A stretch of 64,000 nucleotides of DNA from Phaeosaccion multiseriatum (taxonomy: Eukaryota; Protista; Ochrophyta, other classes), in assembly GCA_965112735.1 (NCBI GenBank), contig OZ218955.1, positions 3,472,001-3,536,000 on the forward strand. The letters run 5' to 3'. The translations under genes and the position numbers were made by a program. Of this stretch, positions 15,709-50,591 are shown piece by piece (position 1 is the stretch's first letter; each line of letters opens with the position of its first letter). The notes under the pieces were generated by a model that did no database searches, had not been told where the DNA came from, and saw only the letters and a list, made by a program, of their open reading frames with translations.

Positions 15709-18700
15709 ATGCAGGGACTCGGCTTTGGAGTACAGCAGGATAATGATGATACTGAGGAAGGACTTGAAGGAGGAGGTATCGCAGAGGCCAGCCTGGGATC
15801 TGCAGATTCTCTTACCGCCCTGCGTGCCCGGTGTGCCCGTGGAAGGGCGGCTGGAGCCAAGGCAGGCGACGAAATTAACCTGGATGAGCGAGAGGCCAGC
15901 CAATACGGCAAGCTCAGACTCAGGTACGGAGGGGACTAGGTGGAGGCAGGCAAGGGCTTGTTTGAACTCTACTGTCTCTTCCCTCCACCAGACAGGGCGC
16001 TAAAAGCCTCGTATCCTCCTCTCCCACCTCTCCTCTCCTTCTCGTTGCCCGCCCATAGATACGCACAGACTCTGGTCAGCAAGGCCTTTAGCGAACGAAA
16101 GAGGCTGGAGCGGGCACAAGGAAACTCTGCAGAAATGGTAAGTAAGTCCGTACTCTGCCGTGCCTCCCCTCTCACCAGTGAAACTCATCGCATAGCCAGA
16201 GAGCGGCCGATGAGAGCCGCGTTGACATTTGTTGTCCAGTCAATCCCCCCGGCCCCTCATACCCCAAGCGCAACCAACCAAATCCCCCCCCCCGCCTCCC
16301 TCCCTCCCTCCCTCCCTCCCTCCCTCCCTCCCTCCCTCCCTCCCTCCCTCCCTCCCTCCCTCCCTCCCTCCCTCCCTCCCTCCCTCCCTCCCTCCCTCCC
16401 TCCCTCCCTCCCTCCCTCCCTCCCTCCCTCCCTCCCTCCCTCCCTCCCTCCCTCCCTCCCTCCCTCCCTCCCTCCCTCCCTCCCTCCCTCCCTCCATTTC
16501 CCACCCACCTACCCACCTAACCAACCAATCCGCACTACAGGAAGCCGAAAAGAGACGCCTGCGAGAGGCCCAGCGCCTTCTGCGGGAGGTTCGCCTGGTC
16601 GCAGACCTCAGGAGCAAGCTCATTTACAACATGTGCATCGAGCAGCAGCTGGCCATGCGCAAGGCCCTCGCGCTCTCGAGACGGAGGATTGCGGACTTTT
16701 GCGAGGCCAGGAAACTCGCCGATAAGGTAACCTTCGTCTCGTGAATGAAAGCTTTGAGGTGCTTTGACGTGCTCTTAGGTGCTCTGCTTTTCAGGCGCAG
16801 CCTTCACCCACACACCCCACACACACCCGGGGGTGCACTGATTATGCGGATCGTGATGGCCCACCCTCTATATCGGTGTGCTCCTCTCTCTCTCTCTCTC
16901 TCTCTCTCTCTCTCTCTCTCTCTCTTTCTTCCAGGAGGAGCTCGTAACCGCGGGTGTCCTGGAAGAGATCCAGTCCTGCCTATCCGGGTAAGTGATCACC
17001 CCTCTACTCCCCTCTGCCGGCGGGATGAAGCACCTCAGTGGAGAGACGAATATGCTCGTGTGTCTTCTCCCATATGCCTCTAACCGCCCCCACCCCCTCC
17101 CCCCTCCCCCGTATTTATAGAACCTTCTTGTACATTGGCTTGGCGGCGGCGGGGCAGACCGGCATGGCCATTGTGGACAGCGCTGGCGACTTGAGCAGAG
17201 ACCGCAGCACAGAGGCCAACACCTCCAAGACAGCCGTCGCTGCCGCAGCGGACAGAGCGGAGGGAGGAGAAGGGGGAGGAGGGGAGGATGGTAGGGAGAG
17301 GAAGGTATTGATGAATCTGATGAGACCGAAGGGGGCAAGAAGGAGCCATGCGAGAGAGAGCGTCACCGCTGGGAAGGAGCTCCAGCCGCACGTCGTGTTC
17401 GACACTGTGGACACTCGGCGGGTGAGCGTGCTGGTGATATAGAGGGAGGGAGGGAGGGAGCGAAGGAAGGAAGAAACAGAGGAAGGGGCGTGAGGCTGAG
17501 GTGGAGAGGGGGCTTGCTGGTGTTTGTACCTCACATAGGGTCTCGAACACCGTCCTCCGCCGAGGGTCATACTCCAAAGGGCCCCTTGTGTCTCTGTTCT
17601 GTTCCTCTCTGTTCCCCTCTCTCCATCTCTGTCCACTTCTCTCTGCTCCTCTCTCTGTCCCTCTCTCTCTGTGTTCCTCTGTCTCCCTCTCCCCCTCTCT
17701 GCTTCTCTCTCTCTCGGTTCCTCTGTCTTTTGTTTCCTCTCTCTCTGTCCCCCCCTCTCTCTTTCTCTATCTGCCCCCCCCCCCCTCTCTCTCCCCCTCT
17801 CTTCTCTCTCACCCTCTCTCTCTATGTGTGTGCCCATCCCACCCCCTTTCTATGCTCCTGTACTCTAACTGATTGATGCCACTCCCCCCCTCCTCCATCT
17901 CTCTTGGCACCACAGCCTGTGGTGATTTCTCAACACGCCGACTCGGAGGACGAGGATGAGAGGGACCGAGCTGCCATAGACGCAGGGGAGGGACAGCCAC
18001 CAGGAGGGGAGGGAGCCAGGGAGGGGGGAAGCACACTAGCAGGAGAAGGTGCGGGGGATGGTGACTCCTCAGACTCAAGCAGCAGCAGCAGCAGAAGCAG
18101 CAGCGGTAGCAGCAGCAACGGCAGCAGCAGCAGTGGCAGTGGTAGTGGTAGAAGCAGCAGCGGCAGCAGCGGCAGCGGCAAGGGCAGTCACATCGCATCT
18201 GGCGGCACAGGGACGAAGAGGAAGAGGAGGAGGGCAGGCAGCACTTCGGTGACGAGCGTGGAGGCCTCGGCTGCTGCGGAGTACGAGAAGCAAGAAAGCC
18301 CCTCGCACCACTCCCCTCACCCCCACCACCACCACCACCATCACCATCACCACCACCACCACCACCACCACCACCATCACCGCCCGAAACGGCCACAAGT
18401 GTGCATCCCCATCCAAGGGGAAGACGACGAGATGGACGTGCTTGGCGTGATTGGGGCCAAGCACTTCAACACGGGACCCAAGCAAGCCAAGCTCCTAAAG
18501 CCGGAACAGGTGGCCCATGTTGGGCCCCAAAGCCTCGAGGCCCCCAAAGACGGCAGCAGTAGACCCTCCCCACCCCACGGGGGGATTGAAGGGGTGCCCC
18601 CCGGGGGGATGGGAGCGATAGTGGAGGGAAAGGAGGGCGACAAGCAGCTGGTGGCACGCCTTGACGCGATGATGCTGCCTCTCCTACAGGGTAGAGACAA

Positions 18701-48700: not shown

Positions 48701-50591
48701 GATGGTGCGAGGGGTGGAGGTGTGGCATCTGTCCCGCATTGGGAAGAAGGACTTTGTTCTCATGGACCCGAGAGATGAGCGAATAGTGAAGAGGAAGACG
48801 AAGAAGGAGGATGAGGAGGAGGGGGAGGAGGGGGAGGAGGAGGGGGAGGAGGAGGAGGGGGGGGGGGGGGAGGAGAAGGAGAAGGAGGGGGCAGTGGGGG
48901 AGGAGGGAGAGGAGGAGGGGACGAGAAGAAGCCGGCGACAGCGGCGAGGGTCGGGAATGAGCTTCCGCGGCGTAGCCAACGTCACACACGGAGTGGCCCG
49001 CATCAAAGGCGCACTCAACAAGGCCAGCCGACGGAGGGGCAGCAGCAGCACCAGGGATGGCAGCGGACGACGCTCGCTCGACTCTCTAGGCGGGCGTGAG
49101 GTTACAGAGTGTTTCACTGAGAAGGTCGTGGCTCGCGTGGCCTACGAGCTGCCCACCCAGAAGGAGGCGGGAGGGGTGGCAGTTGGTGATACAGCAGCAG
49201 GAGAGGAGAGTGCGGCACAGGGAGAGATCGTACTTCGAAGCTTCTGGAAGGATCTTCCTGCTGAAGCCATGCGGGCACAGAAGGTAGGGGATGGCAGCTG
49301 ATGGGTGGCTTCACAGGGAAGATAGAAGGGGTGTGGATTGGTCACGTTCGACTTACAATCGGCTTCATCCCACTCCATACGACTGGAACAAAGTGTTGGT
49401 ACTTCATCCACTCCATGCGAATGCGAGGTGCTGGTGTTGATCTCACCCACGCACACACACACCTGTGCCCACACCGCTAACCGTCCTTCTTTCCTCCCCC
49501 TCCCTCCCTCCCTTCCCAGGCGATGCAGCGAAGTCGCATCTTGAGCGCCAACTGTGAGTGGAGCGAGGCGCGCGTGAACTTGCTGGCCGAGGAGTGGCGG
49601 CTCTGCACCACGGTGAGTGAGGGCTTGGGTGGGCTGTAGAGGTAGATAGAGGGGGAGGGGGAAGTAGGACAGGCGTATGGACTCAGAGGAGAAGGTTGCA
49701 ACAGAGCCCTGTTATGCATAGGGACGTGCGTGCGTGTGGCTTGCTTCGACTCTGTCTCCTCTCCTATCTCTTCCTCTTCCTCTTCCTCGTCCTCTCTCTC
49801 TCTCTTGCTCCTCTCGCTTCTCTCCCTCCTCCTCTCTCTGTCTTTGATAACACAGACCCAAGTATTCCTTGTGCAGAATGCCCCCACAGAATGCCCCAAG
49901 TTAATCCATCACATCCACCTTCTCTCCCGCCATCACCCCCCCCCCCCCCCCTTTTCCACATCTCACGGCAGGGCGAGTACGCACCCCCTCGGGACACCCC
50001 TCAGCCCTTCATGGCCCACACGGGTCACCTCATTATCCCCTTCCTCAATGCCAAAGTGCTCAACGATGACAGGGTCGTCGGGCATGGCCTGGCCCTGCTT
50101 GTGGATGAAACCGCCGATTGGAAGATGTATAGAGACCTGCTGGCACGGGTAAGACGCACAGGGCTCCCTGAATTGTCTAACTGGCTGACTGGCTGGCTGG
50201 CCGACGGACTGACTGATGGACTGACTGACTGACGGGCGACCCCCACCGCTCCCCCCACATGACCCTTCGTCCTTCCTTCCTTCCTTCCTTCCTTCCTTCC
50301 TTCCTTCCTTCCTTCCTTCCTTCCTTCCTTCCTTCCTTCCTTCCTTCCTTCCTTCGTTCCTTCCTTCCTTCCTTCCTTCCTTCCTTCCTTCCTTCCTTCC
50401 TTCCTTCCATCCTGCCTTCTTCTTCCTTCCTTCCTTCCTTCCCTCCTTCCTTCCTCCCTCCCTCCCTCCCTCCCTCCCTTCCTTCCTTGTCGGCTCATTG
50501 CTTCTCTGCCCAGGTTGCTCTGTTGGCAACACGGCGATTTGATCGATTGGAGCTGGCCTCCAGACCCGCAGGGACCCCTGGGGGAGGGTGA
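15709..50591 (+). CDS. Giant (~8,100 aa, ~39 exons) multi-GAF-like / multi-C2-domain protein with Tudor-like inserts and an IQ-like motif
   Basis: Traced from ATG 15709 to TGA 50591 through GT..AG junctions whose phases match, e.g. GK-S|DPF at 33036/33292, QAS|DFLG at 30496/30742, LLQ|PGG at 39246/39524, LAR|VALL at 50148/50514. The junction at ~45100/45439 is the least certain. About 15 C2 domains (GLAKADxFGxSDPF...VWDxD...DFLGQ) and about 10 GAF-like helix/sheet modules (YxGLLxPGG..., CVPL...GVLxxDS/T). Length is a hand sum of exons. Confidence 0.78.
16295..16495. repeat. (CCTC)n intronic microsatellite
   Basis: About 200 bp of perfect cctc repeats in an intron. Similar tracts at ~27855-27995 and 55365-55445 (as gagg). 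Confidence 0.95.
21400..21720. repeat. Intronic pyrimidine-rich minisatellite (~65-80-bp units)
   Basis: ctactcttctctgctcactcttctctaatctgctctcccctctttccctctcctc repeated about 3 times, plus degenerate copies. Confidence 0.85.
24692..25200. repeat. Intronic ~26-bp tandem repeat (tgtagtatgtcaatgggtggg..) followed by ~290 bp of (TCTG)n
   Basis: About 7 copies of (a/g)tgtag(t/a)atgtcaatgggtgg at 24692-24880; tctg run at 24910-25200. Confidence 0.9.
28190..38160 (+). other. First C2-domain array within the giant gene (about 10 C2 domains)
   Basis: Domain starts near 28190, 28960, 29945, 31225, 32260, 32975, 34665, 35820, 36805 (degenerate) and 37580 (degenerate). Most retain the ADxxGxSDP and WDxDxxxxxDFLG acidic loops. 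Confidence 0.85.
36075..36140. repeat. (TTAGAGCGGG)n intronic decamer repeat
   Basis: Four perfect copies at 36101-36140 plus degenerate copies upstream. Confidence 0.9.
41170..44920 (+). other. Second C2-domain array within the giant gene (about 5 C2 domains)
   Basis: Starts near 41170 (degenerate), 41810 ([18 protein letters not shown]), 42530 ([18 protein letters not shown]), 43495 ([18 protein letters not shown]) and 44205 ([18 protein letters not shown]). Confidence 0.85.
50270..50485. repeat. (CCTT)n intronic microsatellite
   Basis: Long ccttcctt tract in the last intron of the giant gene. Confidence 0.95.

Follow-up and report, generated by a model that had tools for sequence, protein, structure and literature searches.

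A 64,000-nucleotide (64-kb) stretch of the genome of the ochrophyte Phaeosaccion multiseriatum, referred to here as the window (contig OZ218955.1, positions 3,472,001 to 3,536,000; G000:C6:3472001-3536000 of a 67-Mb assembly in 22 contigs), very probably carries between positions 15709 and 50591 one huge gene, encoding a protein of about 7,400–8,100 amino acids. All positions given below are those of the window. The predicted protein is a chain in which two types of GAF-fold module, A and B, alternate, and arrays of C2 domains are inserted within B-type modules. The window DNA has a G+C fraction of about 0.6, and its introns are of the GT-AG kind with CT-rich tracts. Long open frames with coding-like codon use were found from about 15.7 to 50.6 kb on the forward (+) strand only, and the same holds for all domain matches. 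The features of the gene are as follows.

15709..50591, + strand: giant gene, complete coding span; crude chain of about 49 exons, about 7,400 amino acids
15709-15923, 16080-16137, 16541-16726 and 16935-16987 (span 15709..16987), + strand: N-terminal exons, charged and helical-looking, read from the sequence
17121..19554, + strand: A1, degenerate A-type GAF with long low-complexity inserts; A profile at 18057-18518 (E 7e-3) and 19381-19554 (E 2e-5), RPQVCIPIQ motif
19901..21188, + strand: B1, compact B-type module with no C2 insert; B profile at 21057-21188 (E 2e-9), start motif at 19931, charged helix at 21081, aligns with the B modules of homologues
21735..23628, + strand: A2, A-type GAF over several exons; A profile at 21735-22028 (E 1e-14), 23019-23258 and 23371-23628 (E 5e-8), motifs
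23781..25843, + strand: B2, B-type module, its end sharing an exon with A3; B profile at 25373-25843 (E 4e-12) in the open frame 25358-27757
26366..26650, + strand: conserved beta-rich linker domain between B2 and A3; phmmer matches to the brown-alga proteins P0018:998-1088, P0019 and P0006:467-538 (E 1e-10 to 1e-15)
26855..27754, + strand: A3, best-preserved A-type GAF, single exon, with a low-complexity loop of about 95 residues; A profile, structure model
28011..28178, + strand: N-terminal part of B3, helix and first strand; phmmer match to Hapterophycus P0006:856-919 (E 4e-9)
28179..37983, + strand: C2 array nested in B3, 8 clear and 1–2 degenerate copies, several of them intron-split; Pfam C2, C2 profile, Ca2+-loop motifs
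38293..38970, + strand: C-terminal part of B3 including its helix, sharing its exon with the start of A4; B profile (E 2e-8), open frame 36451-39291 continuing into A4
39154..40657, + strand: A4, A-type GAF in two exons with a long low-complexity loop; A profile at 39503-40657 (E 5e-33), tree pairing with P0008 a4
40720..46700, + strand: putative B4 with 4 clear nested C2 domains (41794-44610) and 1 degenerate (~41100-41600); Pfam C2 (E 2e-62, four stretches) and C2 profile, the start and end of B4 by pattern only
46740..47768, + strand: putative A5, divergent and GAF-like; pattern only
48620..50591, + strand: putative B5 and C-terminus; motif at 48714
49521-49612, ~49972-50148 and 50513-50591, + strand: last exons, read from the sequence

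Both ends of the gene are those proposed by an earlier sequence-only reading of this DNA. Between the stop of the upstream gene, at about 14985, and the ATG at 15709 lies an AT-rich gap (15.3-15.6 kb); at the other end, a TGA at 50589-50591 closes the last exon, and the DNA after it is again AT-rich. The same reading had put the protein at about 8,100 residues, but our chain of 49 joined exons sums to only about 7,400. This chain is a dynamic-programming model, and such chaining can always find some path. Exons and modules were searched and folded individually, and the crude joined model was used only for the length sum and for hydropathy. A Pfam scan of the N-terminal exons was blank.

The A modules are GAF domains, as judged by structural modeling; the A3 model has the GAF fold, in which an antiparallel sheet is packed between an N-terminal helix and a long C-terminal one. 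An A profile built from A modules of other organisms detected A1 to A4 with the E values listed above, and a pattern scan located the A motifs where the sequence-only reading had placed them: YxGLL at 21768, 26930 and 39229, WPxxCxPL at 23226, 27491 and 40271, and GxLxxDSF at 27542 and 40322. LPGxxVYxGLL and GVLxVDxF are also among the A-type motifs. The gathering score of the Pfam GAF families (PF01590/PF13185) was reached by no module of the window; A3 scored 23.5 bits against GAF_2, under the cut-off of 28.6, and the remaining modules gave no match. Homologous modules elsewhere do pass the cut-off, in P0013 (GAF_2 29.0 and GAF 26.2) and in P0045 (GAF_2 57.4). The nearest language-model clusters of A3 (26861-27742) are GAF clusters. 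A3 was modeled by AlphaFold (AF2) with 25 aligned A modules as input, and the core of the model has a predicted local distance difference test score (pLDDT) above 90. The top 50 Foldseek matches of this model are nearly all GAF domains, and against about 50 solved GAF domains its Z scores range from 15.8 to 13; the best VIA-align superpositions (Z 15.8) have root-mean-square deviations (rmsd) of 2.5 Å over 147 residues for 3oov_A and 3.1 Å over 154 residues for 7jrj_I. GAF domains of Nlh1 and NifA were found among solved structures with the A profile (E 5e-5 to 6e-3). Residues S44, P211, P216 and G228 and the WPYVCVPL/GVLxVD block, all lining the sheet, are strongly conserved in A modules. Comparison of A5 with the A profile by hhalign, and with homologues, gave nothing significant; its nearest language-model feature clusters are GAF/GAF_2 at 0.90-0.91, a lead only. 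An A-profile search of the genome found A-type GAFs in this gene only, which is thus single copy. Three loci that single-sequence genome searches had offered as paralogues (L002, L004 and L006) were set aside; their matches look like low-complexity or chance ones, L002 being a glycosyltransferase open reading frame (ORF) and L006 a PT-repeat ORF. P0035 had no match in this genome.

B modules start with a helix and a strand (...NMPxxxxVEVW...) and end with a helix (...CVRGRExR...). Of the features noticed in the earlier reading, VEVW was recovered at 19961, 28074 and 48714, and charged helices were recovered at 21081 and 38863. The B fold was modeled on a homologue, the compact metagenomic relative P0009, which has a complete B module free of low-complexity sequence at residues 25-305; 14 aligned B modules were used as input, and the B modules of the window are linked to the model by alignment and profile matches. 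The model (pLDDT 71.6) superimposes on the second GAF domain (GAF-B) of the phosphodiesterase (PDE) PDE10A with Z 12.7 and an rmsd of 3.0 Å over 136 residues, and its top 50 matches are nearly all GAF domains (Z 12.7-9). No similarity between the A and B profiles was found by hhalign, so the two are separate GAF types by sequence, and the B profile had no significant match in the PDB. The B modules appear, then, to be a distinct, degenerate GAF type. Structure comparison with solved GAF domains thus upheld the earlier description of the modules as GAF-like, with Z 15.8 for A3 and 12.7 for the homologue B model. The proposal of five A/B pairs stands in part: A1–A4 and B1–B3, about 3.5 pairs, are statistically supported, whereas B4, A5 and B5 are placed by motif or position only, and B4 and B5 were not significant against the B profile or any homologue. 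The small beta-rich linker domain between B2 and A3 has no Pfam match.

C2 domains (PF00168) were matched by Pfam in six ORFs (27726-30458, 30662-31504, 31642-31965, 31937-33766, 34826-36091 and 40267-45141). Five of the six passed the gathering score of 22 bits, with 208, 98, 80, 65 and 48 bits; the E values are 2e-62, 4e-28, 1e-22, 6e-18 and 1.5e-12, plus 9e-4 for a C-terminal half-domain. A C2 profile built from the clear copies found 8 clear and 1 weak copy at 28.2-38.0 kb and 4 clear copies at 41.8-44.6 kb, and two further C2-like stretches (~36.9-37.3 kb and ~41.1-41.6 kb) are degenerate by eye. Twelve of the approximately 15 C2 domains counted in the sequence-only reading are thus clear; the others, up to 3, are degenerate, and 15 is not a firm number. 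Introns interrupt several C2 domains, whose halves then fall on successive exons; for example, ORF 30662-31504 covers Pfam positions 2-50 and ORF 31642-31965 positions 59-97. The Ca2+-ligand aspartates of the loops are kept as that reading had stated (loop-motif scan). Most copies have all five Ca2+-ligand acidic residues of loops 1 and 3, and at least 7 copies show the pair ADxFGxSDP and WDxDxxxxxDFLG; one D is replaced by N at 35864 and one by E at 42970. In the first array, Ca2+-loop motifs lie at 28239, 29991, 31274, 32303, 34711 and 35864. Ca2+ and lipid binding by the C2 domains of the window is predicted. A homologue search with the C2-rich exon retrieved generic chytrid C2 proteins only.

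The arrays do not stand between the modules; they are inserted inside B-type GAF domains. The N-terminal part of B3 (28011-28178) runs directly into the first C2 domain in the same exon, and its C-terminal part (38293-38970) lies 10 kb downstream, in the exon that holds the start of A4, with the C2 array between the two halves. B4 apparently has the same build, as judged by pattern. The insertion point is the loop after the first strand, and the arrays hold about 10 C2 domains in B3 and about 5 in B4. The same design was found in marine metagenomes. In L007, an uninterrupted ORF of 4,045 residues (P0013) and two adjoining ORFs have the order A-B[9 C2]-A-B-A-B[7 C2]-A-B[3 C2]-A, and in L008 the order is A-B-A-B-A-B[4 C2]-A, so that the number and place of the C2 arrays differ among family members. 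Since the nested order occurs inside the uninterrupted P0013 ORF, the nesting is real and not an artifact of gene modeling. Exons also bridge successive units of the gene: 25358-27757 holds the end of B2 and A3, 36451-39291 the end of B3 and the start of A4, and 46434-47852 the rest of the terminal helix of B4 and A5. These bridging exons, the C2 halves on successive exons, the B3 halves on either side of their array and the nested ORF of L007 together argue that the span is very probably one gene, as the sequence-only reading had held.

Four public sequencing runs match the window, all from one sample and in contig form. Over 45100-51099, they cover exons and introns equally and with zero differences, and are therefore genomic. 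Joints in the run contigs were considered as splice evidence and rejected, being short-sided (19-23 nt) artifacts at GCA/GCAGCAG repeats. GCAGCAG-type repeats at 47179-47200 and 49179-49200 are common to many sites in the genome and give rise to false joints and to a very high summed contig depth. Long microsatellites of the (CCCT)n, (CT)n and (CCTT)n types lie in introns at 16285-16490, 16885-16925 and 50270-50460; read in frame, they give PPSL/SLSL repeats that lengthen spurious ORFs. The upstream gene (13296-14985, + strand) has a Cys-rich tail at its end (…CTTQCNDAHNGSTCFYDPRCTACGSDPYSC … CRFCGVETFTDIPCPY) before its stop at about 14985.

A phmmer search with A3 against 1.84 billion representatives returned 33 relatives. 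The named ones of the C2 type, all partial, come from the brown algae Hapterophycus, Choristocarpus and Discosporangium, and the rest come from marine metagenomes. The named relatives are all labeled ‘hypothetical’ or ‘unnamed’; P0013 bears the Joint Genome Institute (JGI) label ‘Ca2+-dependent lipid-binding protein’. Oomycete relatives, from Aphanomyces (P0045), Pythium (P0030) and Phytophthora (P0069), have 2,300–2,600 residues and no C2 domain; their five A-type GAFs, with B-like modules between them, are accompanied by a SAM domain and, at the C-terminus, by a pair of EF-hands. Searches with P0009 and P0013 added only P0007, P0054 and P0069, and a PDB search with the whole of P0045 was swamped by calmodulin matches to its EF-hands. 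In the tree of A modules, A3 of the window groups with Hapterophycus A3 and P0008 a3 (support 100/98) and A4 with P0008 a4 (96/90), and each of the five oomycete positions forms a clade of its own; the deeper branches have no resolution. These groupings indicate that the modules are old, position-specific orthologues and not recent repeats. The design recurs in distant stramenopiles with orthologous module positions; it is therefore under selection and cannot be put down to faulty annotation. A Tudor/SH3-like insert (GDIVEVWYSSKWLCGAVIRDRGREYYDVIYE...) was seen in the A2-position GAF of brown-alga and metagenome relatives (P0018:540-620, P0007:600-690 and P0054); no counterpart is detectable in A2 of the window. 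As the sequence-only reading had suspected, no named family with a GAF chain and nested C2 arrays turned up in the annotations of the relatives or in the searchable literature, where ten chained GAF domains, two of them with long C2 arrays inside, are undescribed, well known as GAF and C2 domains themselves are. The gene is a member of a stramenopile family that has not been described before and that is, very probably, a distant relative of EFCAB5, a radial-spoke protein of sperm.

An aside of the sequence-only reading, that EFCAB5-like proteins should be compared, proved to be a good lead, in view of the top solved match and of the EF-hand relatives in oomycetes. The best solved match of both A-type profiles is 9fqr_Xl (E 2e-7 and 6.5e-5), a chain of 1,509 residues from the 96-nm axonemal repeat of bovine sperm. 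Three GAF-like stretches of this chain are matched by the A profile, and the P0009 B model aligns to the next domain, residues 1174-1322, with Z 9.2. By its length, set against the radial spoke 3 proteins in the protein list of the structure paper, the chain is probably EFCAB5. EFCAB5 lies in the stalk of radial spoke 3, bridging to radial spoke 2, and its GAF domains are structural (PMC11779644). Its knockout impairs sperm motility in the mouse, and the protein is reported to be absent from Chlamydomonas and Tetrahymena (PMC12423330). The P. multiseriatum genome encodes RSP3 and RSP4/6, from which it follows that the organism makes spoke-bearing flagella. Radial_spoke_3 (PF06098) has strong matches at two loci (G000:C8:1247098-1248008 and G000:C1:2716194-2717016), which suggests from sequence that there are two RSP3 genes.

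We somewhat favor, at a little better than even confidence, the view that the gene encodes a Ca2+-responsive GAF-chain scaffold with nested C2 arrays, possibly flagellar. The protein would be very large and probably soluble, with a short charged N-terminus followed by ten alternating A and B GAF-fold domains, each closing in a long helix that leads to the next. Like EFCAB5 in the stalk of radial spoke 3, the chain may be an elongated scaffold with a structural or docking role. A Ca2+ response would come from the C2 arrays, through binding of acidic phospholipids, in place of the C-terminal EF-hand pair of the oomycete and animal relatives. The flagellar location is a guess by analogy, which draws on the EFCAB5 relationship and on the radial spoke proteins encoded in the genome. 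A more specific version, which we consider rather improbable, would make the protein the ochrophyte counterpart of EFCAB5, an axoneme-bound GAF rod of the radial spoke in which about 15 C2 domains, nested in the loops of two GAF domains, have taken the place of the EF-hand sensor. On entry of Ca2+, the scaffold of the axoneme would then be clamped to the membrane of the flagellum, or to structures coated with lipid, and the waveform would change. If that were true, the ‘sperm-specific’ EFCAB5 lineage would be ancient and common to opisthokonts and stramenopiles.

Several points weigh against the flagellar scaffold and its EFCAB5 connection. The link to 9fqr_Xl spans about 70 aligned residues, and the structure table labels this chain ‘A-kinase anchoring protein 14’ (AKAP14), its identity as EFCAB5 being our inference; AKAP14 is a small protein of about 200 residues, which does not fit a chain of 1,509. 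The window protein has neither an EF-hand nor a DPY30 motif: when the long ORFs on the + strand of the span were scanned with Pfam, which is the scope of all the Pfam negatives given from here on, no EF-hand and no Dpy-30 domain was matched, and a pattern scan gave no EF-loop pattern. B4, A5 and B5 are beyond statistical recognition, and the B fold comes from the homologue model and not from the split B modules of the window itself. The cell location, and the Ca2+ and lipid binding of the C2 domains, are predictions. The matching public runs are genomic, and a single transcript is inferred from the sequence.

This last point also bears on whether the span could be a row of at least two paralogous genes, divided for instance into units 1-2, 3-4 and 5. 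Unit 5, being unrecognizable by profile, could belong elsewhere, every prediction from brown algae and metagenomes is incomplete or split, and a dynamic-programming chain yields some path in any case. Yet each of the unit boundaries from 2/3 to 4/5 lies within a single open exon, the helix at the end of B1 and the start of A2 are in a shared frame with one stop between them, and the C2 arrays are enclosed by the halves of B3 and B4. No internal AT-rich stretch like that at 15.3-15.6 kb or that after 50.6 kb was seen in the span, and four units occur in one ORF in L007. We therefore regard separate genes as highly improbable.

For a single protein, two other functions have to be weighed against the scaffold. 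The 12–15 classical C2 domains with complete sets of Ca2+ ligands, and the JGI name of P0013, would suit a cytoplasmic membrane tether or trafficking machine of the ferlin, extended synaptotagmin or MCTP kind, outside the flagellum, in which the GAF chain would be a spacer or an oligomerization rod. Such a machine is unlikely, though worth keeping in mind, because the GAF modules have EFCAB5-like EF-hand proteins as their specific relatives, Pfam found no SMP, FerA/DysF or other lipid-transfer or ferlin domain, and the crude joined model has no transmembrane anchor. Its hydropathy scan showed no transmembrane segment, as the sequence-only reading had remarked in setting the protein apart from ferlins and MCTPs, and only two weakly hydrophobic stretches, both within GAF elements. 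That reading had also proposed ligand sensing. GAF modules that were true small-molecule sensors (of cyclic nucleotide, haem or another ligand) could control the C2 arrays allosterically; they have the fold of ligand-binding GAFs, with PDE, DosS and Lcd1 among the top matches, and the sheet-lining residues named above are strongly conserved. However, no NKFDE-like cyclic-nucleotide motif came up when all + frames of the span were scanned by regular expression, no output domain (cyclase, PDE or kinase) was matched by Pfam, and the conserved residues are, by our own reading only, unlike those of the known ligand-binding GAF classes. The nearest characterized relative, moreover, uses its GAF domains structurally in a radial spoke (PMC11779644). 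Sensing by the GAF modules thus seems very unlikely to us, and the Ca2+-responsive scaffold is retained as the preferred reading. Its tie to EFCAB5 gives an uncharacterized algal giant a testable hypothesis and suggests that EFCAB5 may have deep stramenopile relatives that carry other Ca2+ modules, either EF-hand or C2.

Among known systems, the Chlamydomonas radial spoke chain 7jrj_I is likewise an axonemal GAF protein and is tied with 3oov_A as the best match of the A3 model; at 14% identity and with a score tied with bacterial GAFs, the likeness is one of fold only, and no relation was seen at the sequence level. The tandem GAF-A/GAF-B proteins, PDE2/5/6/10 and the cyanobacterial adenylyl cyclases, share the GAF fold, the tandem layout and long connecting helices with the window protein, and PDE10A GAF-B (Z 12.7), PDE6 and PDE2A (Z 11-14) are among the top structural matches, at 7-18% identity. 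They have two GAF domains against ten in the window protein, where neither a catalytic output domain nor an NKFDE motif is found. Ferlins, MCTPs and extended synaptotagmins resemble it in their C2 domains, which are of the classical PF00168 kind, form arrays and carry Ca2+-ligand aspartates; the window protein differs from them in having no transmembrane anchor, FerA/DysF or SMP domain and in carrying its C2 arrays inside another domain.

The closest resemblance is to EFCAB5 and the oomycete relatives, which share with the window protein repeated A-type GAF domains (GxSF ... PxxxxPL ... GVLxVD) with interspersed B-type modules and are likewise large and soluble, with a Ca2+-binding element that in the window protein is a predicted one. 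The correspondence in position between the modules of the window and those of the EF-hand type is without resolution in the tree. The relatives have their own C-terminal EF-hand pair as Ca2+ sensor, which the window protein does not have, and neither the SAM domain of the oomycete forms nor the DPY30 motif of EFCAB5 is found in it. The window protein, in turn, has 12–15 C2 domains nested in two GAF domains and is 3–5 times larger. EF-hand and C2 domains on one scaffold would then be a natural experiment in the swapping of Ca2+ sensors.

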